Assembly (NCBI GenBank): GCA_965240325.2
Contig: OZ251238.1
Coordinates: 868,001 to 932,000, forward strand
Direction: 5' to 3'
DNA length: 64,000 bases
Source: Rebecca billardiae RCC1528
Lineage: Eukaryota; Protista; Haptophyta
The position numbers were made by a program, and so were the translations under genes. Of this stretch, positions 2,460 to 62,269 are shown piece by piece. Every line of letters begins with the position of its first letter. The first letter of the stretch is position 1. Below the pieces are notes generated by a model. It saw only the letters and a list, made by a program, of their open reading frames with translations. It had not been told where the DNA came from and did no database searches.

Positions 2460-2713
2460 TGCGCAATGCTCACCGCGCAACGATCGTCGGCCGCGGCTCG
2501 CAACTGACGACAAGCCTCCCCGTCCGGTACGGTTAACGGTACGTACAGTTTACTAAGAATAAGAGACGCGTATGATCGTACCCACACACAGTACTGATGT
2601 GCTGCTAAAATCTACGACGACATGATCGATATACGCCTTAAACCAAGTGTGCACGTTAAATCATAGTAAACTGTACAACATCGATACAGTATCGAGAATC
2701 GATCGAAATCTCG

Positions 2714-7187: not shown

Positions 7188-7486
7188 CTTGATGAGCCGT
7201 GCGCCAAGCGCACCTGGAGCCGTGGAAAATGCGCGTCGGCGCGCAGTGCACGGAAAAACATCCCGCTCCAGGCTGGCGGCGGTTGGCAGGGATCCGGGCG
7301 CGCATCGGCATTCGGCAGTCGATCCGGCTGACGAGCGTGCGCAGCGGCTGCATCGGTTACAAAAGTGGTGCCCGCGCGCAAGTTGGGCTGTGCAAGCCGG
7401 CCGGTTGCACCTGCCGTCGAAGGTTGAGCGCGACGAGACGGACAGCCTCCACGGCGGTTAGAGTGCGCGTGAACGCTGGGCGGTCA

Positions 7487-9403: not shown

Positions 9404-10070
9404 GAGCGAGCCGGCGCGGCCAGGGCGTGGCGCAGCGGCCGCGGGGCGAGTGGGACCGTGAGGGCCAGCTCGCGCCGCGGGCCGTGCGCGCGCGCGCGCG
9501 CGCGGAGCCCTGACTCGACGCGCGGCTCGGCTTCCGATGCCGCACTGGCTCCACGGCGCGTCCGTGCTGCGGTCCGCCCTCGACGGCCATCGCGAGACCG
9601 TGCCGCAGTCCGATGGCTCCAGCCAGCCCGGCGCCGCCGCTGGCCGGAAGCGGCCTCGATTGCCCGCTGGGCTCGCGTGCGGCCCGTGCCGTGGAGATGA
9701 CTTGGATCAGGCTGCGGCCATTCCGCATTCGTCAGAGCAGGTCATCTGACGACGGGCAGCAAAATCCGGTGATCAAACTTTTAGAAATGCAGCGGGTTTT
9801 TCACCGCTTTTTTGATGGCAAATGCCAAATGGCGCCGTTCGTGCCGAGGACCGGTGCCGAGCGAGCGTGAGATGAAAATGACTGCCAAGGTCCGGGTGGA
9901 AAGTTTCGGAGGAGTTCGACGAATCGACGGCGGATCCGGCAATCTCACGTGCGTCCGCACGGGCGGCAAACGGGCGCAAACCGTCCCGCGCGAACGCCTG
10001 ACTTCGGTCCACCACGAGAACCGACCGAGGAACAGTCCGCGCGCAACCCGTCCGCCCGCCCGCCCGCCCG

Positions 10071-11102
10071 ATGGTCCTGACGGCGCCCTACCAGCAGTAC
10101 ACGGCTCTCGTGTACGGTGCCGGCGTGCTCCTCCCCATCACGTCGCTCTTGCGCGCCGCTCTTGGGCTGCCACTCGGCCTCGCGCTGCTGCCGCTCATGT
10201 GTGCTGGCTGGGTTCGGCTCTACTACGCGACGACGCGCGCATTCCCGGGCCTCAAGATGACCGCGCTCAAGATCGTGACGGTGCGCGCCGAGCTGCACGC
10301 GATGGGTCTGCGCGAGGACCCCGCCTCCGCCGCCCTCCTCCGCTCTCTGCCGTGGGTGCCGGCGTGGGCGCGCCAGGCGATTGTCTCACACCTGCCACTC
10401 GCAAGCCTCACACCCTGGTTCGCGTTCCCGCTCGAGGGGCGGCGGCTCGAGCGCGCGATGACCGCGGACAAGGGCGTCGGCATGGTCGTCGCGCTGCGCT
10501 CGCAGCTCATCGACCGCACCCTGCGCGCGAGCGCGTCCAAGCAACTCGTCATCCTCGGCGCCGGCCTCGACACGCGCGCGCACGGCGCCCTCGGCGCCGG
10601 CCGGCGTGTGTTTGAAGTGGACCTACCCGCGACACAGGCGGCGAAGCGTGAGGCAGTGCGCGCCGCGGGCCTGGACGACTCGCACGTGACCTACGTAGGC
10701 GTCGACTTCGACTCGGACGGCGGCGCGTCGTGGCTCGACCAGCTCGTCGCCGCAGGCTTTGATCGTGCCGCTCCGGCCGTCTATATCTGGGAGGGAGTCA
10801 CCTACTATCTCCCAGAGGCGGCGGTGGATCAGACTGTGGAGCTGGTGAAGCAGTGCGCGCCCGGCACGGTGCTTGCGCTGGACTACTTCACGGCCGAGCT
10901 GGTGAGCGGCGAGCTCTTCCCGTTCGGCTCGCGCGAGCTCAAGGGCTGGGCAGAGCCCCTTCGCTCGTGGATCGGCGCCGCTGCGGACGAGGAGCCCGCA
11001 CGCGCGTGGGCGGAGGCGCACGGCCTTATCCTGCGCGACTGGATGTGCGGTGGGCCGAAGGGCGCCCGGTGGGGTGGGGCGTGTGCCGTTGAGGTGCGCT
11101 AG
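10071..11102 (+). CDS. SAM-dependent methyltransferase (LCM/YktD/Rv0731c-like) with N-terminal hydrophobic segments
   Basis: QLVILGAGLDTRA, VFEVDLPATQAAKR, VGVDF, IWEGVTYYL motifs. Confidence 0.88.
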   Translation: MVLTAPYQQYTALVYGAGVLLPITSLLRAALGLPLGLALLPLMCAGWVRLYYATTRAFPGLKMTALKIVTVRAELHAMGLREDPASAALLRSLPWVPAWARQAIVSHLPLASLTPWFAFPLEGRRLERAMTADKGVGMVVALRSQLIDRTLRASASKQLVILGAGLDTRAHGALGAGRRVFEVDLPATQAAKREAVRAAGLDDSHVTYVGVDFDSDGGASWLDQLVAAGFDRAAPAVYIWEGVTYYLPEAAVDQTVELVKQCAPGTVLALDYFTAELVSGELFPFGSRELKGWAEPLRSWIGAAADEEPARAWAEAHGLILRDWMCGGPKGARWGGACAVEVR

Positions 11103-11682: not shown

Positions 11683-14482
11683 ATGTCTTGGGCGATGGCC
11701 ATCGGCTTTGGTCGCGCGCTGCGGCAGGTGGGCCGCGCGCACGCACCGCATACGCGCGTGCGACCTCGCGCGCCGCGGTGCCTCGCGTGTCGCCGACCCT
11801 TTTCCCCGCTGCGCGCCGTTCGCGCGCGTGTGCCCGGCGCATGGGACCAGGTGTGCCGGCCGACGCGCAGGCCGGCACAGCGCGCCTTGTCGGTTCTCTC
11901 GTCGCCGCCTCCGCCCGGGTACACGCCTTTCCGCCTGCACGACTCCTTCGTCGCCGAGTACGCGCGCGTCGAGCCCGAGTTCGGCTTCAACGGCCTTGGC
12001 AAGCTTGTGTTCGAGCGCACCTACTCGCGGCCACTCGGCGGCGGCAGGCGCGAGCGCTGGTTCGAGACCGTGGAGCGCGTGGTGAACGGGACGTTCAACA
12101 TGCAGAAGCAGTGGCTCGAGCACCACGAGCTGCGCTGGGACGCGGGCGAGATGCAGGACACCGCGCAGGACATGTACGAGCGCATCTTCACGATGAAGTT
12201 CTTGCCGCCCGGCCGCGGGCTGTGGGCGATGGGCACGCCGATCACGGAGGAGCGGCGGCTGTTTGCCGCGCTGAACAACTGCGCGTTCGTGAGCACGGAC
12301 GCGATCGAGGACGACTTCGCCGCGCCGTTCGCCTTCCTCATGGAGGCCGCCATGCTCGGCGTCGGCGTCGGCTTTGACACGCGCGGCGCGCACACGATCC
12401 TCGTCCGGCGGCCGACAGGCGCGCAGCCGCTGACGTACGTGATCGCGGACTCCCGCGAGGGCTGGGTGGGCTCGCTGCGCGCGCTGCTCGAGAGCTACGC
12501 GCACGGCTCCGCGCCCGTGGTACGCGCGCGTCGTCCCGACCTCCGGCCGGCGCGGCGCGCTCGCGAATCGGCAGCGGCAGCGGTCGGGGGCATGGCCCGC
12601 TCGCGCGCCGGTTGACCGCCGCGCCTATGCACCACCGACCGGCACGCGTGCTCGCGCGCGTATTTCACGCGCGCAGGAGTTCGACTACAGCCTCGTGCGT
12701 CCGGCGGGCTCGCCGATCCGCGGCTTCGGCGGCATCGCCTCGGGCCCCGGCCCGCTGCGCGAGCTGCACGAGACGGCGCGCGCCGCGCTGGAGCGAAACG
12801 TCGGCCAGCCTGTGAGCGTCACGACCATCGTCGACATCATGAACCTGGTCGGCAAGTGCGTCGTGGCGGGGAACGTGCGGCGCACGGCGGAGATCGCGTT
12901 CGGCGACCCGCGCTCCGACGAGTACATCGACCTGAAGAACTACGAGGTCAACCCGCAGCGCATGTCGTACGGCTGGACGTCGAACAACTCCGTGTTTGCC
13001 GAGCTCGGCATGGACTACTCTCCTCTCGTGCGCAGGATCGTGGCCAACGGCGAGCCTGGGTTCGCGTGGCTGGACAACATGCGCTCGTACGGCCGGATGA
13101 ACGGCGTGCCCGACCGCTCGGACTGGCGCGCGTCGGGCGGGAACCCGTGCCTCGAGCAGACGCTCGAGTCCTTCGAGCTCTGCTGCCTCGTCGAGACGTT
13201 CCCGGCCAAGCACACGGACCTCGAAGACTTCAAGCGCACGCTCGACGCCGCCTTCCACTACGCCAAGACGGTCACACTGGGCGAGACGCAGTGGCCGGCG
13301 ACGAACGCGGTGATGCGGCGCAACCGGCGGATCGGCTGCTCGATCTCGGGGGTCGCGCAGTTCATCTCGAGGTGCGCCGCGCCCACGGCGCGCTTGCGGC
13401 GCGCGCGCCCGTCGGCGCGCGCGCGACTCAACCGTGCCGCGCGCCACCGCCGCCGCGCCCGCGTCTCGGCCCGCCGCGCGCGCAGCCGCGGGCTGGGCGA
13501 GCTGCGCGAGTGGTGCGAGGCCGGGTACGGCGAGCTGCGCGACATCGACGCCAAGTACTCCCACCGCTTCGGCATCCCGCGCTCAGTCAAGCTCACCTCC
13601 GTCAAGCCGAGCGGCTCAGTCTCGCTGCTCGCGGGCGCGACGCCCGGCCTCCATTTCCCAGAGTCGAGGTTCTATGTGCGGCGCATGCGGCTGCCGCGGC
13701 TCTCGCCTCTGGTCGAGCGGCTGGTGGCGGCGGGTCTGACGGTGGAGCCCGCGGTGGGCGACGAGGAGCAGACGCTCGTCGTCGAGTTCCCCGTGGACGC
13801 GGGCGAGGGCGTGCGCTCCGTCCACGAGCTCTCGATGTGGGAGCAGCTCTCGCTCGCCGCCTTCTTGCAGCGCCACTGGGCTGACAACCAGGTGTCCTGC
13901 ACGGTCACGTTCGACCCGGAGACGGAGGCCTCGAGCCTCGCGTCGGCGCTTGACTACTTCCAGTACCAGCTGAAGGGCGTGTCGTTCCTGCCGCGCCTCG
14001 CCGACGCGACCGCGTACCCGCAGATGCCGTACGAGAAGATCTCCGAGGAGGAGTACGAGGCGATGATGGCGCGCGTGCGCATGGACGTGCTCTATGCCGA
14101 GGAGCGCGAGCAGCGCGGCGCGGGCGGCGCACGCGCGGACGCCTGCGCGGGGGCGGACGCGGGGGCGGCGCTGGGCGCGCCCGGCGGGCGCGGAGCGTCG
14201 GGCGACGCAGCGGGCGCCGGCGGCGCGGAGTGGGCAGCGCGGGGGCGCAAGCCGGCCGCGCCGCCGAGCGCGGACCCAACGGCGGACGAGCAGCACGCGA
14301 TGCACGCGGCCGACCACACGCCCGACATCTTCTGCGACTCCGACCGGTGCGTGCAGGAGGAGGTGCGGTCGATCGCGCGCAGCATGTCCGCCAGCGGGCT
14401 CAACGGCGCGGGCAAGCAGTCGCAAAGACGCGCGGCGGCAGCTGGCGGCGGCGGCGGCGGCAGTCTAGGCAGCGACTCGTAA
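11683..14482 (+). CDS. nrdJ: Class II adenosylcobalamin-dependent monomeric ribonucleotide reductase (RTPR/NrdJm type), 4 exons, putative organellar presequence
   Basis: GFNGLGKLVFERTYSR, FLPPGRGLWAMG, LNNCAF, VVAGNVRRTAEI, GWTSNNS, NGEPG, GGNPCLEQ (radical Cys), ELCCLVET, RNRRIGCS, TSVKPSGSVSLL, WADNQVSCT, YPQMPYE, C-terminal FCDSDRC. Introns 11728-11850 (acceptor uncertain), 12520-12676, 13372-13485. Confidence 0.95.
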
Positions 14483-15684: not shown

Positions 15685-16581
15685 AAATGTCCGGTTTAAA
15701 GAGATTCTGACATCTTGCATCGTCTGCATCGGCGCCCTGAGAAATATGTCCGAGGACATACAAACCCTTGCGGTCGGGACGAAAGGACAAGTGTGGGTAG
15801 ATCTTCGGAATGGCTCCAGAGTTGAGTGGCTGGATCACCCGCTCGAAAATCACGTCGCAGGATTGATGCTCTGATTCCCACTGGCCACTGTTCCCCAGCA
15901 GATTACCTAATCAGCCACAACGATGATTAGGGCTTGTTTACATCGGCTCGCATCACGTTTTGGCGCGTGGATCGCAAGCGCAGCTTCGTGAACCATGTGG
16001 ATGCCGGCGAATGTTTGTCCGAACATCACTTTCGCGCTGATTGAATGGTCATTGAACTACGCGCAACCCCATTAGCCTTTAATTAGTCCTCCTTGCGCGC
16101 GCACAGGCGGAGGGATCCTGGCGGCGAACTTTGATGGCGAACGAACCAAGGCGACGCCAGACCTTCGGTTCGCGCGACCGCCCACCTATAATCAAGGAGG
16201 CTCCGAAAGTCGCGAACGCTCAAGATCACGAATTCAGTTTCGTCGGGGATCATTTGCAGCTGCTCGATGCCACCGAGGAGATTGCGGTTCGGTCACCTGA
16301 CTGCCTTCCTCCGCTGGCGTACATACGCCCGAGGCTTAAAACGAGGACTCGATGGTGCGCGATCTTGGAACGCATCTGCACTTGGGTAATTCCGAAATCG
16401 CGTGATGAACAAGTACTCATCCGCACCCAACCTCGCCGGGGCGGCATCGGCCGAAGCTTTCACTTGTCACGCCGCATCAGGCTGGGCCCAAACGTAGTCG
16501 CAAGTCGCAAACCCGCCGCGAACCCCCTCACTTGGCCATCTCCGCCACCACCGCGCTCGACGCCTCTGTCGCCTCACACCT

Positions 16582-18444
16582 ATGCCCGCACACGCGCGTC
16601 CAGACGAGGCAAACGCGGCGCAAGCGTCCGAGCACGCGCCCGCCGCGGTCGGCCTTGCGCTTCTTGCCCAGGCCTCCGCTGTCAGCGATGAGGACGCCGG
16701 CCTCGCGCCCGCGTCGTTCGAGGACCAGCAGGTGCGCCGCCACGGCCCGGCCGCGCCGACCGGGGTGGCGTGCGCGCGCGCGCCATCCGCACGGGGTGGA
16801 GGCTGGGGTGGGCGGCAAGGGTACCGTTGCGCATCCTGCCTGGCGCTGGTGGCCTCCCCCCTCGGCGCACGCCGAGCAGCCACGCGCTGGCGTGGCGCCC
16901 AGGCTCCCCGGCGCAGCGTGTCTCACCTTTGCTCTCCCCCCGTGCGCACGCCTCGCCGCGCGCAGGCCTCCGCGCCGACGGACGCCGGGAAGTATGGCGT
17001 AGGGCCCACCCGGCGCGTGACCGCGGGCAAGTCCCGCCGCGGGCCGCAGAAGTGCTCGCGCTGCCACCAGCCTGGACACAAGTCCAGGTCATGCATCTGG
17101 CGCAAGATCGCGCTCGCCAACACAGTCAACCACGCGCCCGGCACTCCGGGCGCGGCGCAGGACGAGGCGGAGGCCGCCGCCGGCGCGTTCCACCAGATCC
17201 CCGCCGCCCCGTTCCAGCCCTCGCCGCACGCGCCGACGGGGCCGCACGCCGCACCGCCCGCGCTGAGCGGTCAGCAGATGCAGCCGGCGGCGGCGCCGCC
17301 GCCGCCGCCGTCGTCGTCGCAGCTCGTGGCCCCGCAGGCGGGCATGCCGCAGCAGCACCAGTCGCCGCACCCGATGTCGACACATTGGGACTACAACGCG
17401 CCGCCGATGCAGATGGGCGCGTCGCCGGTGCATCCCCACCAGATGCAGCCCGGCGCGCCGCAGGTGGCCATGATGTCGCCCGCATATGGCGCGCCGCCGC
17501 CGCCGCCGCAGCAGATGTGGGCGCAGCAGCCGATGCCAGCGGCGGCGGGCTACGCGCACGCGCCGTCGCCTGCGCCGCAGCAGCCAGCTGCGGGCGTGTC
17601 GCAGCCGCAGGGCGCGCAGGCCCAGTACCAGCTGCACGCGCCCACCTCTGCGCCGATGGGCACGTCGGCGGCCGCCGGCGGCGCGGACACGCCGCCCGCT
17701 CCCGGGCAGAGCGGCCCCGTTGACGCGGTGGCCGCTCAGCCGCCGTACGCGCCGATGGGCAGCATGCCGCCGTACGGCATGCAGCTCGCGCAGCCGCCGC
17801 AGCTGCCGCTGCCGCCGCCGCAGCAGCCGAATGACAATGCCCCGCCGTCCGCCGCCCCGGAGCAGCCGCCGCAGCAGCAGCCGCCGCCGCAGGGCGGCGA
17901 GCAGCAGCCAATAGGAGCGCCGCCGCAGCAGCAGCCTCTTGGCCAGGCCCCGCCGCAGCCGTACGGGTGCTACTACCAGCCGGCCTCCGCGCCGATGCAG
18001 CAGCCTGGGTGCTACGCGGGCATGCCCTCCGGTGCGTCCCAGCCGGGGATACCCAGCCCTGCGCAATATCATCCGCAGCAGCCGCAGCAGGTGGGCGAGT
18101 CGCCGCATGCGCAGGGCGGCGCAGCGCAGGGCGTGCCCGCGCACGTGATGTTCGCGTACATGCCGCCGATGCAGGGGCAGGCACAGCCGCAGCAGCCGCA
18201 GCAGCCGGCGCAACAACAGCAGCCGCAGATGCCGCAGATGCAGCCGCAGCCGCAGCAGCCGCAGCACATGCATGGCGGCGAGCCAACGCGACAGCCTGAG
18301 CAGCCGACGGGCGCAGACACGTCGCAGCCGATGCACTCGATGCAGACCATGTCCACGCAGGCGCAGCAGCAGATGGCGCAGAGCTACTCCGCGCAGCAGC
18401 AGATGGCCTCGCCGCAACTGCAGGCCATGCAGGCGGTCGCCTAA
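16582..18444 (+). CDS. CCHC zinc-knuckle protein with long Gln/Pro-rich (prion-like/activation) tail; intron 16732-16965
   Basis: CSRCHQPGHKSRSC (C-x2-C-x4-H-x4-C) after a basic patch. CAG|GTGCG...CGCAG intron is in frame. About 430 aa Q/P/A-rich. Confidence 0.8.
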   Translation: MPAHARPDEANAAQASEHAPAAVGLALLAQASAVSDEDAGLAPASFEDQQVRRHGPAAPTGVACARAPSARGGGWGGRQGYRCASCLALVASPLGARRAATRWRGAQAPRRSVSHLCSPPVRTPRRAQASAPTDAGKYGVGPTRRVTAGKSRRGPQKCSRCHQPGHKSRSCIWRKIALANTVNHAPGTPGAAQDEAEAAAGAFHQIPAAPFQPSPHAPTGPHAAPPALSGQQMQPAAAPPPPPSSSQLVAPQAGMPQQHQSPHPMSTHWDYNAPPMQMGASPVHPHQMQPGAPQVAMMSPAYGAPPPPPQQMWAQQPMPAAAGYAHAPSPAPQQPAAGVSQPQGAQAQYQLHAPTSAPMGTSAAAGGADTPPAPGQSGPVDAVAAQPPYAPMGSMPPYGMQLAQPPQLPLPPPQQPNDNAPPSAAPEQPPQQQPPPQGGEQQPIGAPPQQQPLGQAPPQPYGCYYQPASAPMQQPGCYAGMPSGASQPGIPSPAQYHPQQPQQVGESPHAQGGAAQGVPAHVMFAYMPPMQGQAQPQQPQQPAQQQQPQMPQMQPQPQQPQHMHGGEPTRQPEQPTGADTSQPMHSMQTMSTQAQQQMAQSYSAQQQMASPQLQAMQAVA

Positions 18445-26315: not shown

Positions 26316-26582
26316 CAAGGGGCTTACAAATACCACTGGGGGCGAAACACAGCTGTCGGATGCGATGTACATGAGACGGACAGTGTCCGGTCAGTGGAAA
26401 ACACTGTGGGGGAAGTTTGAATCCGGGAAAGCGGGTAATCTGTCGAGCCATCTCGTATTCTTTCAAGGCATTCCGGTCTTTTTTTCATACGAGCTCCCGG
26501 ACGCTGTCCGTCTCATGTACATCGCATCCGACGGGGCTCCTCACTGGCGCTTTCGCCCCCAGTGGTATTTGTAAGCCCCTTG
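26316..26582. mobile_element. MITE family B (P-element-like CAAGG...CCTTG ends) with 7-bp TSD GTTCAAC
   Basis: Perfect ~32-bp TIR CAAGGGGCTTACAAATACCACTGGGGGCGAAA plus internal IR GTCGGATGCGATGTACATGAGACGGACAG. GTTCAAC at 26309-26315 and 26583-26589. Confidence 0.9.
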
Positions 26583-26697
26583 GTTCAACTGCGTCGGTGG
26601 TGAGGTGGTCAAGCTTCCGGACTCCGGAGTTGAGTGGCGCTTCGCAGCCGTCCGGCGCCTGCTTGCGCGTCTGGACGGTCACGTTGGCCCTCTCATC

Positions 26698-28006
26698 ATG
26701 GCGCTGGTGCAGCTCGTCGTGCTCCACGCGCTCGCGTTCACGGCGCCGCGGTGGGCACCGCGCGCGCGCGTGGGCGAGGTGGCAGTGCGCATGGCCGCCG
26801 GCGCCGACGACGCCGAGCTCCGCGAGATCCTCGGCGGCACGCACAAAGCGCCAAGCGGCAAGTTGCGCAAGAATCTTGCCAAGGGCAAGAAGGGCCTGCT
26901 CACCATCATCGGCGGCTACAACAAGCGGTGGCCGGCGATCGACTTCGCCAAGGGCGAGTACAACGCGCGCGAGCTCGACGAGATCGAGTACGTCACCTCC
27001 CAGTTCCGCCTCGGCGGCGCCGTCGCCGTCAACATTGAGGTGGGCGACGAGGCGTGTGATCTGGACGACCTGCGCGCGGCGGTTGCCGAGCAGGCGGCGG
27101 CGAAGGGCGAGTTCCCCGGACCGTGCCCGGTGATGATGAGCGGGGAGGTGTCGGACGAGCTGCATCTCGCCGAGGCCAAGCGCATCGGCTGCGACGCGGT
27201 CGCCATCGACATGGGGGCGCTTGGCGAAGCCAAGGTGTGCGCCGTGCACCGCTACGCGCGCGCCGCGCGGCGCCACGCGCGCGCCGCGCCGCGCAGCGCG
27301 TGGCGCCGCTGCGCGCTCACACCGCGCGCACCCTCTCCCCTCCCCACGCGCGCGCGCGCATGCACCCGGCAGGCGGCGGAGCTCGTTCAGACGGCCGGCT
27401 CGCTCGGCCTCGAGGCCCTCGTCATCGCGCCCGCGACGGCTGACGGGATCGGCGCGGCGGCCATGCTGGGCTCCGATCTCCTGTGCGCGCGCGGCGCCAC
27501 GCTCGACGAGTGCGCGGCCGCCGCGGCCGCGTTCCCCGAGGGCTGCGTGCGCGTCGCGATGGCGCCGGTGGCGGACGTGCGCGAGGCGTGGAGCATGCGC
27601 GACGCGGGCTTCAACGCCGTCGCCCTGGGCAACGAGATGCTGCAGCAGTCCACCATCGAGCGCGTCGAGATCCAGTCGATTCTCAAGGCGATGCGCGCCA
27701 AGGTGGGCGCTGCGCTGCGCAGCGCTGCGCTGCGCGCGCGCGGCCCGAGGGCGGGCGCGTAGGCACGAGGGCGGGCGCGTAGGCCCTCGGACGCACCCGT
27801 GCAGCCCTCGGGCCGCGCGGCTCCCGGGGCGCGACGCGCGCACGCGCTGCCGCGCCCGGCCGATCCGATGCCCTCGTCTCACACTGCGCGCCGCCGCCTC
27901 CCTCGTGGCGCGCCGCTGATGGCAGGGCTCGTCAAAGTACGGCAAGGGCACCGGTCTCGGGCGCGGCGAGGGTGCGAAGGAGATCCTTGGCACGATCGCT
28001 GTCTGA
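26698..28006 (+). CDS. Plastid-targeted indole-3-glycerol-phosphate-synthase-like TIM-barrel protein, 3 exons (26698-27234, 27373-27702, 27926-28006)
   Basis: Signal peptide ...HALA-F then Arg-rich transit peptide. IGPS-like elements (GAVAV, CPVMM, LAEAKRIGCDAV, SLGLEALV, DAGFNAVALG). Canonical catalytic residues appear altered. Confidence 0.7.
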
Positions 28007-40165: not shown

Positions 40166-42751
40166 TCAACAGATGACGGCCCCGCACTCGACGAGGCGCA
40201 GGGCGAGCAGCTGCGGGCATGGGCCGCACGACTGATCGAGCACTACCTCGAGACTCGGGCTCAGCCGCGCACCGCTCTCGCCCAGCCAGCGCGCCGCGCC
40301 GCGCACGGCGCGCACGTCCGCCGCAGGCTCGGCCGTCGCGTCGCAGCCGTCGCCGCTGCCCGCCAGCGCGCGGCTGTTGACAGCGGCAGCGGTGAAGCAG
40401 AGCGCGAGGAAAGCGCGGGCCTGGAGCGCGCGCGGCATGCTCTGCGTGCCGTCGCCCCACGCGTCCGCTCCCGGCGTGACATCGAGCCGGTCCTGGGAGG
40501 CAGCCGACGCGGCGTGTGCGTCGATGCGGCGCGCCACGTCGGCAAACAGCTCGCGCAGGGTCGGCGGCTTGGTCGCGCGCGGCACCGGGCAGGCCCGAGT
40601 CGGGGCCGAGTTCTCCACGAACGCATCCTGGTCGTCCACCTCCATCGCGTCCACGGGCTGCTCTGCGGCTGGCCCGGAATCGTAGTGCAGCGGCTCGCAC
40701 GCGTCCATGTCGTCGTGTCCGCGCGGCGGTGACGCGCCTCCGAGCGGGCCCGCATCTCGCCCCTCGTCGCCGTCCGCGGCGTCCGGCGCGGGATCGCCGC
40801 CGCACGTGCCGCCTGCGCCGTCGCCGAGCGCATCGCCAGCGCACACGTCGAGCAGGAGGTCGTCGGCGGCACACCCGTCGGCGACGTGCGCGCCGCCCTC
40901 CCAAGACAGCATGCCGTGGCCGGACGGTGCGATGCCGTACTTGGCGCGCGCGCCGAGCAGGGCGAGATTGCGAGGCTTGCCGCCGTCCGAGCCGTACAGC
41001 AGCACCGACGTGTCGAAGAGGGTCGACATCGCCGGCGCGGTCGTCTCGCCGCCCTCGACAGGACGGCCGCCGCCGGATCGCCGCGCGCCGCCCGCGCCGC
41101 CGGCCTTCACCGCCGAGCCGTCGAGCTGCGGCAGGTGCATCGTGAGGACGCGCACCCGCGCGTCCGCCACGCCGCGGTCGAGCGACTCGACCGCGCTCTG
41201 CTCGTCGCGGCGCGCAGCGGGGAGCACGAGGCGCTCGAGCACGAGCTGGCGCGCGTCGCGTACGAGCACTGGGCGCACGCGCGTGGGCGGCGGCTTGCGC
41301 GGCGGGAAGGCGAGAAGCCGCGCCGTGGGCGGATGGAGCACACTCAGCAGCAGCTCTTGCTCATCCTCGCGCTCGGAGCCCGCGCCGTCGCATGCGCGCG
41401 CTGGGCCATCGTCGTCGCGCGACGGCCCTGGGCCGTCGGGCAGCAGAGGCAGGTCGGCACGCGCGTCGTGGGCGGCTGGGAGCGTCGTGCGTGCGCCCAT
41501 GGACGTCTCCCCCGAGCCGGCACCGCGCGTGGGCTCGTACGGCCCCACATCCTCGTCGAGCGCGCACAGGTCGAGGAGCGCGCGCCGCGGCTGCGCGCCC
41601 GAGCGCTCGCCTGCACGCCCGTCCGCACCGGGTGAGGTGAAGGCGACGAGGCGGGCGGCGTCTTCGACTCCCGCGGCCGTGGCGGCCTGCTGGGAGAGAC
41701 CGTCCGCCTGGCCGCAGGGCGGCACAACCGAGGCCGGGCATGCGCACCCACTGATGTCAATAGCGCCGCAGCTGTCGTCTCCGGTGCGGTCGCATGCAAG
41801 CATCTCCACGTCCCGGTCCGCATCATTGGCGGGCGAGCACGCGCCCGGGCCGCCCATGTCGATCTCGATGCCGTCGGCACCCATGTCGCCGCCGAGGTCG
41901 AGCAGCGAGGTGTGCTCGTAGCCGTCGTAGCGCCCCGCTCCGAGCGCGGCATCGTGCCACGCCTCCGCGCGCTGCTGCGGCGGGGTCGCGAGCAGCGCCG
42001 CAATGCCACCCTGACCCTCTGCGCCCTCCTCCTCCTCCGCCCACGGCGCGAGGCACGCGATCGCTGCGTCCAGCAGCTCGGACGCTTGCGCAGGCGGCGA
42101 GTCCGTCTCCTCGGGCCCTTCGATAGACGTGCCCGCGGCCAGACCTCCGAGCGCCGCGTGTGCGGCTCCTGGCGTCTGCAGCCCGCGCTTCTGCGACGGC
42201 GGCGTCTCCGATTCGGGAGCGCTCGTCGCTCGGTCGGTCGTGGGCGAGCTCTGCTCGCCGAGCCACGCGACGAAGGCGGCTGGCGGGGCGCCGCGACGAG
42301 CGAGGTCGCGCAGCTCGTCGGCAGCTGCCGTCCAACGCGCGGGCAGCTCGGCCCGTGGCTGCGCCGTCGCCGCTTGCTCGTCAACGCGCTCGAGCGTGCG
42401 CGCGCGCTTTGACGCATGCGCGTCAGCGGTGCTCGGCTTCTTTGCGCGCGCGACGGCGGCGGACGTGTCGTTGGCGAGCTCGCTCTGCATGCACTGGATG
42501 AGCTGAGAGCGAACCGTCACTTGGTCTCCCGCGCGCTCGAACCAGTCGGCGTTCCGCTGCGCGCCGTCGTCTGCTGGCTCGTCGCCGTCGACGTCGTCGA
42601 GGACGGGCTGCGCCGCCCACGCGGCGAAGCGGAAGGGCGCCTTCTTGCCGCGCTTGTCCAGCTCCGAGCGGACGTCGGTCAGTGCGTACTGCCCATCGTC
42701 GCCGACGCGCCGGAAGCGCCGGCTGAGCGAGATGTGTGGCGGCTGCTGCAT
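40166..42751 (-). CDS. Hypothetical acidic/low-complexity 861-aa protein (possible kleisin-like C-terminal winged helix)
   Basis: Long ATG-initiated ORF with host codon bias. C-terminal TLRELFADV...QARAFLALCFTA loosely resembles kleisin C-termini. Confidence 0.6.
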   Translation of the reverse strand: MQQPPHISLSRRFRRVGDDGQYALTDVRSELDKRGKKAPFRFAAWAAQPVLDDVDGDEPADDGAQRNADWFERAGDQVTVRSQLIQCMQSELANDTSAAVARAKKPSTADAHASKRARTLERVDEQAATAQPRAELPARWTAAADELRDLARRGAPPAAFVAWLGEQSSPTTDRATSAPESETPPSQKRGLQTPGAAHAALGGLAAGTSIEGPEETDSPPAQASELLDAAIACLAPWAEEEEGAEGQGGIAALLATPPQQRAEAWHDAALGAGRYDGYEHTSLLDLGGDMGADGIEIDMGGPGACSPANDADRDVEMLACDRTGDDSCGAIDISGCACPASVVPPCGQADGLSQQAATAAGVEDAARLVAFTSPGADGRAGERSGAQPRRALLDLCALDEDVGPYEPTRGAGSGETSMGARTTLPAAHDARADLPLLPDGPGPSRDDDGPARACDGAGSEREDEQELLLSVLHPPTARLLAFPPRKPPPTRVRPVLVRDARQLVLERLVLPAARRDEQSAVESLDRGVADARVRVLTMHLPQLDGSAVKAGGAGGARRSGGGRPVEGGETTAPAMSTLFDTSVLLYGSDGGKPRNLALLGARAKYGIAPSGHGMLSWEGGAHVADGCAADDLLLDVCAGDALGDGAGGTCGGDPAPDAADGDEGRDAGPLGGASPPRGHDDMDACEPLHYDSGPAAEQPVDAMEVDDQDAFVENSAPTRACPVPRATKPPTLRELFADVARRIDAHAASAASQDRLDVTPGADAWGDGTQSMPRALQARAFLALCFTAAAVNSRALAGSGDGCDATAEPAADVRAVRGAARWLGESGARLSPSLEVVLDQSCGPCPQLLALRLVECGAVIC

Positions 42752-43193
42752 GCTCCCGCGCGCGCGCGCGTCTGGCGCGCGTCACTGGCGGTGCTCGATA
42801 CGGCGGCGGCAGCGTGCTGAGTGTTGTGAGCAGCCGCGCAGGTCCGGGACCCGTCGTCGTCGGCGGCGGCGGTGCCGGGCGTCCGGGCGTGTACTCGAGA
42901 AGCTGAACTTTCTTGAATGTACCCACTACTGTGTTTTGAACTGTCTTCACACCTCACAGCGGTCAGCCGCGCGCACGTACCCGCACATACATACGAGCAG
43001 AGCCAAATTTGGGCCGCCTGTAGCTGAGCGAGAGCTACCCGAGTGAGTCCGGACCATCCGGAGCGTTTCGCCGGAAAAGTTGAAGCAGGTCCTGGTCAAG
43101 ATCCAGCCACACCGCATCCGCCCCGAAGTCGTTGGCTTCCGCCTCGCCGAGCGAACGCGTTTTTGAGCAACCGAGCGCACGCGCACCTCCGCT

Positions 43194-52025: not shown

Positions 52026-53096
52026 TCACTGCGGCGCGGCGCCGCCCGACGGCGCACTCGCCTCCGGCGGCTCGCGGCAGACCAGGTTGATGTCGCGCAG
52101 TCGCCACGCGATCGGGTGTTCCACCTCGTCCTCCTCCGTGGCTGTGTCGCTCGCGTCGTCCGCCGCGTCAGCGAAGATGCCCTCTCGCGGGGCCGCCTCG
52201 CCCCTTTCCGCGCGCATCGCCCGCACCCACCGCACGTAGTGGCCGAACGAGTGCCATCGCCCCACAAACGTGAGCAGTACCTCCGACTCCCGCAGAGGCG
52301 CGTCCGCCGCGGCGGTAGCGGCACTGTCGGCAGCGGCGGCAGCTGGGCCCGCGGAGTTCGACGAGGGCTCTTGCTCCTCGGCCGGCGTGCCCGCATCCTC
52401 GGCGGGCGTACCCGCGGCCTGCGTGCCCGCGTCCTCGGCCGCCTCCGCCGCGCCCACCTCCGCCGCGCCCGCCTCCGCCGCGCCCGCCAGCTCGGGCACC
52501 AGCGCGAAGCGCTCCTTGCTCTTAATCAGCACGTGCGTCACCGTCGCCGCCCACGACAGGTCCGAGTCCATGAAGATGACCTCGACGTCGGCGGAGTCGA
52601 TGCTGATGGCCGGGCGCATGCCCGCGTCCGCGCACGCGCTCCGCGTTTGGCGCATGTACGCGGCGATCTCCGGCTCGACAGCACCCGCCTCCTCAAGCTC
52701 GTCGATGGCATGCGTGCCCGCACAGTACCGGTCCGCAAGCTGCTCGTACACGGCGTCGACGCCGGAAAGTAGGCTGTTGAACGTGCCGAGGAGGAACTCG
52801 CCGTCAGCCGCGCCCACGAGGCGCACCATCTCGCGGTACTCGGGGCTCGTCATGTACCGCCACGGCGAGCGCACCGCGGTGAGCGCTGTACGCGCGAATT
52901 GCACGCCCTCAACGCGCGCCTCGTTGTAGGCGGCGCCCTCTTCGCGCAGCGCGTCGACAGTCTCGCGAAGAAATGCGCGCCGCTCAACCGAGTCTGCGAA
53001 CCCCCACGTCGGCAGCGCCGCCGCCGGCCCCGGCCCCGCGCCGCTGCTCAGGAGGCGGCGTACACTGATGCGAAGCAGCGAGCGACGCGCCATCAT
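52026..53096 (-). CDS. Mitochondrial Tim44-like (MAIP1/Mba1-like) domain protein
   Basis: Presequence MMARRSLLRISVRRLLSS, FLLG...VYEQL, THVLIKSKERF, LLTF..., terminal WRLRDIN. Confidence 0.6.
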   Translation of the reverse strand: MMARRSLLRISVRRLLSSGAGPGPAAALPTWGFADSVERRAFLRETVDALREEGAAYNEARVEGVQFARTALTAVRSPWRYMTSPEYREMVRLVGAADGEFLLGTFNSLLSGVDAVYEQLADRYCAGTHAIDELEEAGAVEPEIAAYMRQTRSACADAGMRPAISIDSADVEVIFMDSDLSWAATVTHVLIKSKERFALVPELAGAAEAGAAEVGAAEAAEDAGTQAAGTPAEDAGTPAEEQEPSSNSAGPAAAAADSAATAAADAPLRESEVLLTFVGRWHSFGHYVRWVRAMRAERGEAAPREGIFADAADDASDTATEEDEVEHPIAWRLRDINLVCREPPEASAPSGGAAPQ

Positions 53097-53258
53097 TTCG
53101 ACGAGAAAGAAGAGACGATGGCGTTCCCCGCCCTTGCGTCCCCGGTAGCTAGCGGTCGGAGCCGGCCGGACTTATCCGGATCGTTTTGCCCCGCTGAAGG
53201 CTGAAAGCCACCGTTGGCCACGGCTGGTGAGCAAGCGCGGCGTCGTTTGAGCGGAGCC

Positions 53259-54868
53259 ATGCTTGCCTCAGCGGCGCCGACGGACGTCTTCGCGGTTGCG
53301 CGCGGCCACGCGACAGATCTGGCGGCGTCCGACCATGGCCACCAGACCGACTTCCACCCGCAGCTCGCGCGCGGCGTGGCGGCCATCGTGCACCGCATCT
53401 CGGACGGCACCGGGGCCGGGGCCGTCACGGTGTGCGCGACAGCGGTACGCGAGCTCTGCTCGCTGCTCGATCGCTTCGCGCCAAGCTTGCAGGTGGCGAT
53501 GATGTCGGTGAATGTGGTGTTCCCAGCGCTCCCGCTCGACGGCGTGCCGCTCGCCCTGCAGTGCGAGTGGATCAGCTGGCTCGCTGCGACCCAGCCGCGT
53601 GTCAGCGGCTTTCGCGAGGCGGAGGCGCATATCAACGCCGCCCGCCGCTTCCTCGAGGCGCCGGCGCCCACGCGCGCCGACGGCCAAGGCGCGGGAACGC
53701 CGGTGCTCTGGTCTCGCGCGCTTGCCTGCGCGCTCGTGCCCGGCTGGGCCCGCGCGCTCAGCCCGAAGTCCAAGCACGTCGGCGCGCAGGTCGCCATCAC
53801 CGTACGCAACCTGTGCTCCGTCCTGAGCGAGTGCTCGCACGCCGCGGAGTCCGGCACGCCCGCGGTCTCGCCGGCGGAGCGGCTGTGTGCCGTCGTCGCG
53901 CTCAACTCTACCGTGTCCGTCGTGCGCCGCTGGACGCTCGCGAGCGGCGACGGCACGCGCGCGCCCGCCGCTCCCGTGCCAGCGCTTGCCCGCACGGGCT
54001 GGCAGCAGGAGCTCCTAACGGCCGCAGTGCACGTGCTGCTCGACCTGCTGCCGCCGCGCTGCGCCGGGCACCTGCTCGAGGGCTCGCTCTGCCTCGCCGC
54101 CGCCGTCGGCCTCTCCCACCTCCTCGAGCGCTCGCCCTCGACGCTGCACGAGATCGAGGCAATGCGGGTGATGCGCGCGCACGGTGCGTTCTCCGCGCGC
54201 CCTGCGGAGCAGCTCGCGCCGCCGGGCTTCCAGCCGGGCCCGAAAAGCGTGTCGCAGCGCATCGTGCAGTCGTGCGTCGAGACGTGCATACCGGTGTGCG
54301 CGCGCGCGCGCGAGCGCGCGCGTCACTCGTGTACGCACGTCAGCGTGAACACCCTGCGTCACCGCGACCACACCGCGCACCCGCGCGTGCGCCGTGCGTG
54401 CAGGGCAAAGGCTTGGCGTGCGCAGAGGCTGGGTTGGTGCTCCTCAGCGCGATCGACGGGCCGCTTTGGGATTCCCTCCTCGCGGTAGTGCCTGGCGATG
54501 CCCTCGAGCTCGCTGGGCTGCTGCAACAGCTGCACTGGCAGGACACGTCCGGGCGGGCAGTGCCGCTGCAGCCCACCATGCGCGCGCTCGCGGAGCGGCT
54601 GCTGTACGGCTTCATGGAGCACGTGTGCGCGCTGCACCGCGACGTATGCGCGCAGTCCATCACGGCCTCGGATCACCTCCTGCTCCTGCCTCTACTCACG
54701 ACCTCCGAGCTCACGCGTGAGTCGCTCGAGTGCGCGACCGTCTTCTACACCTCCGCGCACAACCTCACGCGCGGCAAGCTCGCTGCTGCGGCTGCGGCCG
54801 GCGCCGTGCCACTGCTGCCAGTGCCCCGCGGCGCCCCCGCGAGCGCAGGCTCCACAGCAAGCCAGTGA
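53259..54868 (+). CDS. Hypothetical helical (ARM/HEAT-like) protein, intron 54294-54403
   Basis: CCG|GTGTG...GTGCAG|GGC joins two long ORFs in frame. Leu/Ala-rich helical composition. Confidence 0.65.
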
Positions 54869-57305: not shown

Positions 57306-58076
57306 TCATGACGCCGCCTGGGCGGAATCGTACCATGCGCGGATCTCGGGTACCGCCGACGCGCGCTCGAAGAAGGCGCTGAGCAGCGGGTATGAGTCTA
57401 CGCACGTGGGCGGGATGCCATCCAGGATCCCCCGCTTGAGCCAGCGCAGCTGCGCGAGTACCGTCACGTCCGCGATCGTCGGCTTCGACCCGACGAACCA
57501 GCCCGTGCCATTCGCCTCGAGCATGTCCTCCAGCCCCTTGAGCACCGCCGGGATCTTCTTCTGTGCCGCGTCATGCCGCAGCGCCTTCTGCGCCTTTGCG
57601 CGCTCGGATGCGGAGAGCTGCTCGACGTGCATGATCTGGATGGACGCGCGCAGGGCGTTCTGCAGGTCGTCCGAGAGCCCGAGCACCTCGTCCACCCGGA
57701 TCGCCGCCATCGGGCTCGACGGGTACAGACCGCTCAACTTTCCAATGTACGCAAGCATCGCTCCCGACTGCGCGACCGTCTCGCCGTCAATCTCGAGAAG
57801 GGGCAGCTGCCCGAACTTGGTCTTCGGCTTCAACGCGGGCCAGTCGGCGAACTTCACGCGCACGTCCGTGAACTGCAGCCCGCCGGCGACGCACGCGAGC
57901 CGGACCTTCTCGGCCTGGCCCTCGATGTCCAGGTACGTCAGCTTGAGGGTGGGCTTGGGCATCAGGCTGCGCAGCGCGTCCTCGACCGGCTCGGCGACAG
58001 GCGCGAGCGCGTCGACGCGCGGCATGCAGTACCCCAGCACGGCGCCCGCACCAGCGGCGGCGATCGTTCGCAACAT
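57306..58076 (-). CDS. Glutathione S-transferase (sigma-like) with N-terminal targeting extension
   Basis: LKLTYLDIEGQAEKVRL, KFGQLPLLEIDG, AQSGAMLAYIGKLSGLYP, WFVGSKPTIADV. Confidence 0.92.
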   Translation of the reverse strand: MLRTIAAAGAGAVLGYCMPRVDALAPVAEPVEDALRSLMPKPTLKLTYLDIEGQAEKVRLACVAGGLQFTDVRVKFADWPALKPKTKFGQLPLLEIDGETVAQSGAMLAYIGKLSGLYPSSPMAAIRVDEVLGLSDDLQNALRASIQIMHVEQLSASERAKAQKALRHDAAQKKIPAVLKGLEDMLEANGTGWFVGSKPTIADVTVLAQLRWLKRGILDGIPPTCVDSYPLLSAFFERASAVPEIRAWYDSAQAAS

Positions 58077-58430
58077 GAGCCAACGATGAGGCGCCGACGC
58101 GCGCGGAGGCGTTGCGCGGCCGTGCGGTCCAGACGAGGCGAAGAAGCGCAGTCGTTCGGGATGTCCGCACGCCGGGCAGGCGGACGTGGAATGTGGATGG
58201 AAGCTGCAATTTGCATGCGCCGTGAGCCCCTGACCGGGTACAGTATAATAGCTCATGATTGTAGTCACCACGGCCCAAGGTGTAAGCAGTATCATACAGA
58301 AAGGTTCGTAACATGTACTGATGTAGTACTACTATGTACACTGTGACGACGATCGCTGAGACGAGTCGGAAACCTATGGCGATCGATCGATCGATCGTCG
58401 CCTGTAGCCATCGATCAACATCACTCGTCA

Positions 58431-59705
58431 TCACGGCGCCGCCGGCGCGCCCAGCCCGAGATCGATCACCGCCTCCATGGCGGCGCGCTGCACGGACTGC
58501 GGCAGCGCGGCGCCGAGGCGGTCGGTGCGCGCGGACCACGCGCTGATGCAGTCATGGTAGTGCAGCCGCAGCATGCCGAGCACGATGGCGGAGGCCCAAT
58601 CGAGCGACGGCGGCGCGTCGCCCTCCGCGCCCTCCTGCAGCTGCCGCTCCTCCAGCTCGTCCGGCATGCGCTGCAGCAGCTCGCCCAGGCTGGTGCCAAG
58701 GGCAGACGCCAGCCGAGAGTCGAGCGCCCACCGGCCGTCCGGACGCTGCAGCGGCAGCACTGCGGCGAGGATTGGGTCCGTCTCCGCCTGCGCGGCGGCA
58801 GCGGCGACCTCCGCCGCCGCCGCCGACACCGCCGCCGCCGCCGCCGCCTGCACCTCGTCGTCGTCGTCGTACTCGTCCTCGACCACCGCCCCGGGCGGCG
58901 GCGGCACCGGAATGCCCGGCATCGGCCGGGTAATCCGGTTCGGCTCGCACCAGTTGGCCGCGGCGTATTTCGTCAGCAGGTGCACGAGGACGGGCTTGAG
59001 CGGCGAGCCGACCCACGAGCCGTGCACGTGCACGCGCAGGTCGAGGGCGGGCGGCTTGACGAACGCGATGTCGAGCTCGCCCTTCTCGCCCGCCGCGGGG
59101 CGCATGCCGACGCGCAGCGAGCCGCGCACCTTCAGGTCTCGGAGCTGCGCGACCACCGAGAAGGATCGGCCGAATTTGGCGCCGTCGAGGCGGATGCGCA
59201 CGGCGAGCTGCTCGGAGGGCGGCTCCCACACGATGTCCCACGTCGTCACGTGCTCGCTCTCGTGGCGCACCAGCGCGAGCGCCGGCGACCACGACGAGGA
59301 CGCGGGCAGCACCACCTCCTCCACCTCAAGCGAGCGGACGCCGTCAATCTCGCCGACGCCGCGCGCGAGCGCGCTGGCGATCACGTCGGCGTAGTACGCC
59401 TCGCGGCGCGCGATGAAGCCGGCGTGGAGCACGTCGCGCATGAACCGCGTCCAGCCGTCGATCAGCGCGCTGTGCACGAGCAGCTGCGAGCGCAGCTCGG
59501 CCACCTCGCGCTCGAGCGCCTGGAGGCGCGTCTCGCCTTTGCGCTCGTGCGCCTGCTGCGTCGCCCAGGGCAGCGCGACGCCCCAGCTCGCCGAGAGGGA
59601 CGGATCGATCTTGTGCGTGGGCTTGGCGCCCTGCCCCGTCGCCGCCTGGGCCTGGGCTTGGGCCTGGGCCAAGCCCTGCTGCACCTTGCGCCAGGCATCC
59701 TCCAT
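58431..59705 (-). CDS. Coiled-coil + SMP (TULIP lipid-transfer) domain + VWA5A/PARP4-type C-terminal helical domain
   Basis: SMP signature VAQLRDLKVRGSLRVGMRP..IAFVKPPALDL..LKPVLVHLL..WCEPNRI. C-terminus LPLQRPDGRWALDSRLASALGTSL..WASAIVLGML..W. Confidence 0.75.
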   Translation of the reverse strand: MEDAWRKVQQGLAQAQAQAQAATGQGAKPTHKIDPSLSASWGVALPWATQQAHERKGETRLQALEREVAELRSQLLVHSALIDGWTRFMRDVLHAGFIARREAYYADVIASALARGVGEIDGVRSLEVEEVVLPASSSWSPALALVRHESEHVTTWDIVWEPPSEQLAVRIRLDGAKFGRSFSVVAQLRDLKVRGSLRVGMRPAAGEKGELDIAFVKPPALDLRVHVHGSWVGSPLKPVLVHLLTKYAAANWCEPNRITRPMPGIPVPPPPGAVVEDEYDDDDEVQAAAAAAVSAAAAEVAAAAAQAETDPILAAVLPLQRPDGRWALDSRLASALGTSLGELLQRMPDELEERQLQEGAEGDAPPSLDWASAIVLGMLRLHYHDCISAWSARTDRLGAALPQSVQRAAMEAVIDLGLGAPAAP

Positions 59706-59906
59706 CCTGACAATGCTGCCTCCGCGCGCGCCCGCCGTTGATCAAGAGCGCGCGCAAACTTAAGGCGGGCGCAACCCGGTGCCTCCGGACGGGTGCTGCG
59801 GAGGCACGCCCGGACACGCCTGGCTGCCCAGCAGGTGCGCCCGTCAAGGCAGAGAGGGCGGCTGGAGAGCCGCGGCGAGGCACATTGCGAGCGGCGTCGG
59901 GCGGCG

Positions 59907-62269
59907 ATGAACCTCTTCAGCGGCGCGATCAGCAAGCTCAAGGACTCCACCGGCCTCGACCTCGGCGAGTTCGCCTCGCAGCTGCGCGACGACACGACCG
60001 AGCTGAAGAAGGATGTGAAGGAGGTGGCAGGCAACCTGCATCTGGGCGAGCACATCGCCAACGCCTCGCGCATCTCGACGACCGTGCTCTCGCAGACGGC
60101 CTCGCTCATCGGCGCCACCGCCGAGCACGACGGCGCCGTCGACACCAGCGGGCGCGCCGCGCCGCACACGGGTGCGGGCGGAGGCGGCGCCTTCAGCCGT
60201 CATCAGGAGCGGCTGCGCGCGCTCCGGAGCGACCCGCAGGTGCGGCCCGCCGCGCCGCGCGCGCCCTCGCGGTGGTGTCGCACGCTCGTCCCCACCACGC
60301 CCCGCCCTTCGCGGCCCACGCGTGCCGCCGCCCCGCGCGCCCAGACCTTCACCACCGAACCCGCAGACGGCGAGGCGTTCAAACGCTGGAGCGAAGCATT
60401 TTCGCTCCTCGACCACTCGGAGGCGATCCAGGCGCTGCTGCGCGCGTGCCCCGAGGTGCACGCGCTGCACGCGAAGCACGTGCCGGCCAGCGTGCCCTAC
60501 CGCACCTTCTGGGAGCGCTACTACTACCGCGTGCACAAGTGCGCGGCCGCGCGCGCGAGCGCCCGCCCTCGCCGTGTGTTTGGGCGGCGCGCGCGTGCGT
60601 GCAGAGGGCTTGGAGGGCGGAGGGCGTGTGCATGCTCGACCGCTGCACGGGGCAGGGCCCACCCTCGCCGCGCTGCCATCCACGGGCACGGCCTCGCCTG
60701 CTTCCCCCATGCCGCGCGGCGCGCTCACGAGCTAACCCGCAAGCGCGCCCGCGCCGGCACATCTCTGTGCCGCCCTCGCCGCCCCGGACGGTTGGTCCCT
60801 GGCCGCCCCTGCCCCTGCGCCGGCGCTGGGCGCAGGCTGGAGGTGGAAGAGGCGCGCAGGCAGGAGGCGATCGCGCGCGCGACGGCGGCGGGTGGCGGCG
60901 GCGCGGCGGACGGCGGGCTCGACCTCGACTGGGGCGACAACGACGATGCCGACGATCTCACAGGGGCGGAGGGGAGCTGGCCAGAAGCCGCGGCCGACGC
61001 GGCCGCCGCGCCGCCGGCCGCGCACGCGAGCAGTGCGGCTGTGGAGGCCGCGGTTGCCGACCCGGCCAGCGGCATCGCGGCAGCTGCGGCCGGCGATGGC
61101 GCCGGCGCCGAGGCGGCGGCCGGGCGCGCGCCCAGTGGCACAAGCGGACAGCCCGCAGCGCAGCCGCCGAGCGCACCGCCGCGCGGCGCAGCGAGCGCCG
61201 GTGAGAAGTGCTCGCCTCCGCCGCAGCCCTCCGCGCTCGAGTCTGAAACACCGCAGCTGCCGGCGGCTGTGGCCGCGCCGACGATGGCGGGATCCGGCGA
61301 CGCGCAGCCCGGGGGCGCAGCAGCGCCCGCGGGGCCGGGCTCGGGCCCGGCGGCAGCGCGCGAGAGCGCAGCGCCACAGCCGCCGGCCGCACACTCACCG
61401 GCCGCGGCCCCGGCACCCATTTTCCCTGTCGCTGAGCCGTGCGCTGCGGCTCCGTCGTCCGCGGCGTCATCGCCCGTCGGCGGTGGCGCGGAGGGGTGCG
61501 AGGGCGAGGTCCGCTCGATGTCCTCCGTCTCGGGTGCGTGCGCGCACGCGCGCGCCACGTGCAGCGGCCGCCGCACGGCGCGCTGTCCACCAGCGCAGCG
61601 CAGCACGCCGCGCGCACCCACCTATCCCCCACCGCGCGCCGCCGCCGCCTTCACCCGTCGCCCGGCGCGTGCGAACGTGCGCCGCAGGTGACCACGCCTC
61701 GGTCGACCACTCGATCGTCTCTTCCGTCGAGGCCTCCTCCGCCTCCGCGCTCGAGGCGAGCGGCGTTTCGTCATTCCAGCTCGTGAGCTCGTCAGAGGCG
61801 GTGCGTGCGTGCGCGCGCGGCGCTCTGCGGGGCGGGCGAGCGCAGCGGCGCGCGTGCGTGCGCGCGCGCGCGGCGACGCCTGTGCCGGCGCGTGGGTGGG
61901 CGGGGGTGCGGGCGGCGCACTGCACGCGCGCCACTGACGTGCGCCCGCGCCGCCCGCACCGCGCCGCGATGGCGCGCGCCTCAGGACTCCATGGAAGGCG
62001 GTGGACACGAGCGCGCAGACGCGCTCGCTGACAGCGCTGGCGCCTCCGGCTCACCGCTGGGGCACAAGGCGGTGCGGGCGCCGGCGGCCGCACCCGCGCC
62101 GCCACACGGCGGCGCGCCGGGCTCCGCCCCCGTGCCTGCGCCGCCGGCTGCCACCAGCGCAGCCGCGGACATCGCCGCCCCGACCTCCGCAGCGGCGGCT
62201 GGGCGCGGCGCGGCGGCGGCCGCGAGCGCAAACGACGACGACGACGACGACTGGGGAGACTGGTCCTGA
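59907..62269 (+). CDS. BSD-domain protein, 5 exons
   Basis: LRALRSDPQTFTTEP, LLRACPEVHALHAKHVPASVPYRTFWERYYYR, acidic DWGD motifs, ends DDDDWGDWS*. Introns incl. 60240-60344 and 60539-60835. Confidence 0.88.

Follow-up and report, generated by a model that had tools for sequence, protein, structure and literature searches.

A gene of the haptophyte Rebecca billardiae RCC1528 encodes a protein in which an SMP domain is followed, across a flexible linker, by a helical C-terminal domain (CTD) of the VWA5A type. SMP proteins play a central part in moving lipids at membrane contact sites, and to our knowledge nearly all of those described are kept in place by a membrane anchor or a lipid-binding module. 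The protein reported here has no transmembrane (TM) segment, C2 domain or PH domain, and its two-domain layout is conserved across several protists, where it defines an unannotated family. What is new is the tail, a putative targeting or regulatory element not described before in an SMP lipid-transfer protein; a literature search found no paper describing a protein that joins an SMP domain to a VWA5A-type CTD. With moderate confidence, we take it to be an anchorless cytosolic lipid-transfer protein of a divergent SMP subfamily, which would pair through a coiled coil and use its CTD as a partner-docking tail.

The gene occupies positions 58431-59705 on the minus strand of the 64,000-nucleotide stretch of DNA that was analyzed (the window), and runs from ATG to TGA without an intron, encoding 424 amino acids. 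GC content at its three codon positions is 0.77/0.50/0.95, the strongest coding signature among the window's long frames, and overall GC of the window is ∼70%. A 423-aa protein (P0001), the product of a "complete" MMETSP transcript from the pavlovophycean haptophyte Rebecca sp. RCC1486, is 72-77% identical to the window protein and colinear with it from the first residue to the last, with differences in length confined to two low-complexity indels. This colinear, full-length transcript product shows that the gene is genuine and that its orthologue is expressed, the support for expression coming from the RCC1486 transcript rather than from reads of the window's own organism. The coding sequence and the parts of its product were delineated as follows.

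58431-59705, minus strand: complete single-exon coding sequence, 424 aa plus stop codon (open reading frame list and sequence; third-position GC ∼0.94-0.95; colinear with the 423-aa P0001).
59637-59702, minus strand: N-terminal helix, residues 2-23 (AlphaFold2 helix, pLDDT 83-88; its MEDxWRKxQQ start is kept in the Rebecca orthologue).
59556-59603, minus strand: short motif PSLSAxWGxALPWATQ, residues 35-50, in a disordered stretch (pLDDT <50).
59472-59570, minus strand: helical extension before the SMP domain, residues 46-78, a candidate dimerization coiled coil (AlphaFold2, hydrophobic spacing, VIA, alignment A3).
58908-59471, minus strand: SMP (TULIP-fold) domain, residues 79-266 (AlphaFold2 pLDDT >94, VIA, Foldseek, ESM Atlas).
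58779-58907, minus strand: flexible linker, residues 267-309, in which a proline-rich part is followed by an acidic DDDD run and an Ala-rich helix (pLDDT 46-76).
58434-58778, minus strand: VWA5A-type helical CTD, residues 310-424 (pLDDT 94-98, VIA, profile A4).

The structural assignments draw on an AlphaFold2 (AF2) model built from a trimmed 64-sequence alignment (A3). Mean pLDDT was 88.3 and exceeded 94 in both domains, whereas a model from a two-sequence alignment reached only 33.7. The pTM of the A3-based model was 0.55, a value at which the relative placement of the SMP domain and the CTD is undefined. The N-terminal coiled-coil helix, SMP-like core, acidic/Ala linker and C-terminal motif described in an initial annotation of the sequence are all present where it placed them. 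A Pfam search of the protein returned nothing at E≤10, and whole-protein searches of PDB sequences gave low-complexity noise only.

An SMP/TULIP fold is well supported in the model for residues 79-266, the core of which consists of beta-rich residues 123-228 between flanking helices. In a Foldseek search of the PDB, the best 28 matches were all SMP domains (Mdm12, E-Syt2, TMEM24 and Mmm1; E down to 1.4e-5, probability 1.0), with other TULIP proteins next. VIA-align, run with the whole model against 48,161 representative chains, gave as best of the 50 matches listed the Mdm12 chain 5yk7_D (Z 14.1, rmsd 2.8 over 161 residues), with Mmm1 at Z 10.8, E-Syt2 at Z 10.7-11.2 and TMEM24 at Z 8.3-8.6. 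ESM Atlas neighbors bear SMP_LBD, MMM1, PDZD8_N and SMP_MUG190-like domains, with TM-scores of 0.35-0.39 by query, the query being the whole two-domain model. When a profile of the N-terminal domain was compared with PDB sequences, the sole match was Mmm1, in the correct register and at an E of 0.51, which is not significant alone. These searches bear out the SMP/TULIP core that had been proposed from sequence. None of the curated SMP models PF17047, PF10296, PF25669 and PF26547 matched the window protein (E≤10) or any of 63 relatives (E≤0.01), so that membership rests on the modeled fold and, by sequence, the domain appears to form a divergent new subfamily.

Such divergence from every Pfam SMP model would also be compatible with a domain that, instead of transferring membrane lipids, senses another hydrophobic ligand by binding it (a pigment, a sterol or a signaling lipid, for example) or acts as a scaffold for other proteins; the same superfamily includes proteins that carry carotenoids, juvenile hormone and LPS, and these do appear lower in the match list. 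Intracellular SMP lipid-transfer domains nevertheless lead that list by a clear margin (Z 10.7-14.1, against no more than 8.8 for non-SMP TULIPs, with CETP, BPI, Der f 7, JHBP and SPLUNC1 ranking lower), and the window protein is an intracellular one in which no segment resembles a signal peptide. A role of this kind is distinctly unlikely.

The best superpositions were with Mdm12 (PDB 5yk7, 5gyd and 5h55; Z 12.8-14.1), which is likewise soluble, devoid of TM, C2 and PH elements, and placed by protein partners. This likeness could mean that the window protein is the haptophyte orthologue of Mdm12, which is the soluble subunit of ERMES, a complex between ER and mitochondria. However, no sequence similarity to Mdm12 was detectable, the only profile match being the one to Mmm1, and the coiled-coil helix, long acidic/Ala linker and C-terminal helical domain of the window protein are foreign to Mdm12. 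In addition, we know of no report of ERMES in haptophytes. Given the missing sequence affinity and the different accessory parts, orthology with Mdm12 is extremely unlikely. The extended synaptotagmins/tricalbins, TMEM24, PDZD8 and Mmm1 have SMP domains of similar size (Z 8.3-11.2), but they combine these with an ER membrane anchor and C2, PH, PDZ or C1 modules, none of which is found in the window protein or its relatives.

The lack of a TM anchor or C2 domain, remarked on in the initial annotation, holds by both Pfam and hydrophobicity, and it extends to PH domains and to the ∼60 relatives. No 19-residue segment of the window protein reached TM-grade hydrophobicity, the poly-Ala linker excepted, and TM-grade segments were found in 0 of 63 relatives. 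The accompanying premise that SMP proteins carry TM, C2 or PH anchors describes the typical case, but it fails for Mdm12 and Mdm34, SMP proteins without an anchor that are positioned by protein partners. Because these two also lack them, such anchors are typical of SMP proteins rather than defining.

Behind the low-confidence linker at residues 267-309, helices cover residues 311-416 of the CTD (pLDDT 94-98), and the motif LQRPDGRWALDSRLASALG ... WASAIVLGML lies at residues 319-379. VIA superimposed residues 310-416 on residues 732-842 of chain 9e5c_4t at Z 9.8 (rmsd 3.0, 99 residues aligned, 17% identity), a score in a range that common helix arrangements can reach for a helical domain. The matched segment is the extreme C-terminus, 110 residues, of a "VWFA domain-containing protein" in a Trypanosoma brucei flagellar doublet structure, and it was the sole match covering the CTD among the top 50 listed, the last of which had a Z of 4.9. 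Sequence searches picked the same region. A profile of 21 CTD sequences (A4), compared with 177,635 PDB sequences, gave its best, marginal match at residues 734-800 of 9e5c_4s (E 0.041), and the region was matched weakly by the window CTD alone (E 0.94) and by the CTD of a Rhodelphis relative (E 1.3). The convergence of three sequence queries and a structural search on one region links the CTD to the tail of the VWFA protein, and since no PARP4 chain was found by sequence at E≤10 or among the fold matches listed, the tail is assigned to the VWA5A kind. These data support the earlier reading of the CTD as a VWA5A-type tail domain. A feature search of the ESM Atlas returned nothing for the whole protein and, for the CTD, only unnamed short clusters.

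Human VWA5A (HsVWA5A) and Dictyostelium Vwa1 (DdVwa1) each end in a helical CTD of ∼101 residues that a disordered loop connects to the rest of the protein (PMC10539598). The window CTD resembles these domains, and that of the T. brucei 9e5c protein, in its size (∼100-110 residues), its helical make-up, its position at the C-terminal end of the chain, after a disordered linker, and a shared DGxW/F-x-LD-x-x-LA ... WAT-x-L motif. It differs in following an SMP domain instead of VIT-vWFA, and the presumed vWFA docking surface is not in the chain. Pfam found no VIT or VWA match in the window protein or any relative. Because VIT and vWFA are absent from the chain, the protein shares the CTD yet is not a member of the VWA5A family.

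An exhaustive phmmer search (E≤1e-3) identified 63 relatives of the window protein. Local HMMs of both halves, run on these matches and their 90%-identity cluster-mates, detected an SMP domain and a CTD in the same order in 19 proteins, among them a hypothetical protein of Diacronema lutheri (P0093, KAG8460380.1) and EP00736_P010715 of Rhodelphis marinus (P0037); about forty proteins have the N-domain alone. Every match with a CTD only is a fragment of at most 242 aa, and the longer cluster-mate, where known, has both domains. In a maximum-likelihood tree of the N-domain, all SMP+CTD proteins fell into one clade (support 97/98) in which Rhodelphis P0037 is the first branch, and the sister clade consists of short SMP-only proteins from gene-dense Tara Oceans eukaryotic contigs. 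The N-domain-only sequences placed inside the SMP+CTD clade look truncated; one of them, P0009, falls into a 90% cluster together with the two-domain P0069. Word-index searches with the whole protein and with each domain recovered only the Rebecca orthologue, the whole-protein search having scored the 8000 candidates that share most words, and a scan of metagenome contigs found no relatives.

Several features of individual relatives were also recorded. An SMP-only gene of the sister clade, at 6001-6894 on Tara Oceans scaffolds L002-L004, encodes ∼297 aa with no Pfam match and lies between protein kinase and aminotransferase genes; the contigs, of which there are dozens, are apparently intron-poor and of picoeukaryote origin. 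Pfam domains in the relatives were limited to one sub-threshold FYVE-like zinc finger near the N-terminus of Rhodelphis P0037 (residues 38-95, 22.4 bits against a cut-off of 27.8), which may act as a membrane or protein adaptor in the Rhodelphis lineage. A FYVE anchor was rejected as a family feature, since the finger occurs in P0037 only, falls short of the Pfam threshold and has no basic motif of the RRHHCR type for PI3P; for the latter two reasons, no conclusion is drawn from it. A 703-aa protein from Logan/ENA (P0085) combines an Na_Ca_ex membrane domain with a partial SMP domain and a CTD. It was not accepted as evidence for a membrane anchor because its SMP match is truncated, which suggests that gene calls were merged; were the protein genuine, no other family member would be membrane-anchored.

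How might a carrier of this layout work? Residues 46-98 form a single continuous helix in the AF2 model (pLDDT 93-97) that reaches past the SMP core by ∼30 residues. Hydrophobic residues at 61, 64, 68, 71, 75 and 82 follow a 3-4 spacing when read from the sequence, giving a heptad-like helix at ∼58-82; coiled-coil structures match the extension at a VIA Z of 5.0, and a helix is kept at the position of residues 46-78 among relatives in alignment A3. This N-terminal, heptad-spaced helix probably pairs two chains, an arrangement that would suit an SMP domain, since SMP domains generally function as dimers. From the fold, we infer that a glycerolipid-type ligand would be bound by the SMP barrel and shuttled from one membrane to another. 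The acidic/Ala linker, which varies in length and sequence among relatives, would lead flexibly to the ∼110-residue helical CTD, most likely a protein-protein docking module that recruits or regulates the carrier through a partner. Placement by a partner would be akin to that of soluble Mdm12, which is held in ERMES by its partners and not by a membrane anchor. Upstream of these elements, the PSLSAxWGxALPWATQ stretch is the same in the window protein and P0001 except at two positions while its flanks diverge, and it may serve as a linear motif for docking.

A free SMP carrier joined to a putative protein-docking tail borrowed from VWA5A-like proteins would be a different solution from fixation at contact sites, and it would be shared by a conserved family, present in haptophytes, Rhodelphis and further marine protists, that no Pfam model matches. 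The VWA5A/PARP4 tail domain, which is poorly understood, gains a second, independent context, which may help to reveal its binding target. VWA5A is a candidate tumor suppressor whose mechanism is unknown. The likeliest partner of the CTD would be a vWFA-domain protein, because the published prediction for the VWA5A/DdVwa1 CTD is that it docks on the vWFA domain of its own protein, and an autoinhibitory role has been proposed for this CTD (PMC10539598).

That proposal raises the alternative that the CTD works in cis, folding back on the SMP domain to gate the lipid groove or the dimer interface. The window protein has the linker-plus-CTD layout with which VWA5A-type CTDs, carried on a long disordered loop, are predicted to bind another domain in their own chain (PMC10539598), and the CTD co-occurs strictly with one SMP clade. 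The low pTM, obtained despite pLDDT values >94 in the domains, suggests however that AF2 finds no confident packing between the SMP domain and the CTD, and the vWFA domain that provides the binding surface in VWA5A is absent from the window protein. We consider gating in cis unlikely, and favor docking of the tail on a separate partner.

One such partner could be the major vault protein (MVP), if the CTD acted like the MINT domain (MVPID) of PARP4 and docked the lipid carrier in or on vaults. Targeting to vaults was one of two destinations offered in the initial annotation. In its favor, the only human domain resembling the PARP4 MVPID is the VWA5A tail, at a moderate similarity of ∼6.5 Å over 100 Cα (Suskiewicz et al., PMC10450202), and Dictyostelium vaults have been observed on ER membranes, attached where the bilayer thickness is altered in (thinned) patches (PMC13100048). 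MINT (PARP4 residues 1562-1724) is, like the window CTD, an all-helical C-terminal domain behind a disordered linker, and the literature calls it remotely similar to the VWA5A tail, but it is larger (∼150-160 residues, at least 8 helices). The searches that linked the CTD to the VWFA-protein tail yielded no PARP4 chain, whether by sequence at E≤10 or in the 50 fold matches listed for the whole-model query, where SMP/TULIP domains fill one of the lists and the presence of MINT among the 48,161 representatives is unconfirmed. In the MVP-PARP4 cryo-EM structure, Arg1689, Lys1618 and Ser1614 of PARP4 lie at the interface (Lodwick et al., PMC12280208), and Gln1682 also counts among the MVP-contacting residues; VWA5A has no equivalent of the MVP-contacting Arg1689 (PMC10450202), and the MVP residues engaged by PARP4 were found in vertebrates only (PMC12280208). 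Docking on vaults is very unlikely on this evidence, and the other destination offered initially, a VWA5-type complex, is more likely. We likewise give very little weight to the proposition that the tail docks the SMP carrier on a cage or scaffold protein, either a vault-like shell or a VIT-vWFA protein; if it were true, vault-like or VWA5A-type assemblies would directly move lipids at membranes, which would fit the vaults seen on thinned ER membrane patches (PMC13100048). Literature searches on the 9e5c entry, on haptophyte MVP and for a survey of SMP proteins that includes haptophytes returned nothing useful.

The surroundings of the gene were examined as well. Its upstream neighbor, at 59793-61691 on the plus strand, is a BSD-domain gene (Pfam BSD, E 5.9e-12) in divergent orientation; with only ∼200 bp between their likely start codons, the two genes may share a bidirectional promoter. 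Directly downstream, at 57306-58295 on the minus strand, lies a glutathione S-transferase gene (GST_N and GST_C) whose open reading frame begins with a long extra N-terminal segment, perhaps UTR or a targeting peptide. Other long frames with high third-position GC have no Pfam match (1-1467, 2660-4042, 16498-18441, 26575-27759, 40169-42781, 52029-53171 and 53205-54485), while three on the plus strand do have matches: 12443-14479 to pieces of a class II (B12-dependent) ribonucleotide reductase, 7196-9400 to a two-repeat Myb protein and 10002-11099 to a leucine carboxyl methyltransferase. The genes around the SMP gene are ordinary nuclear genes.
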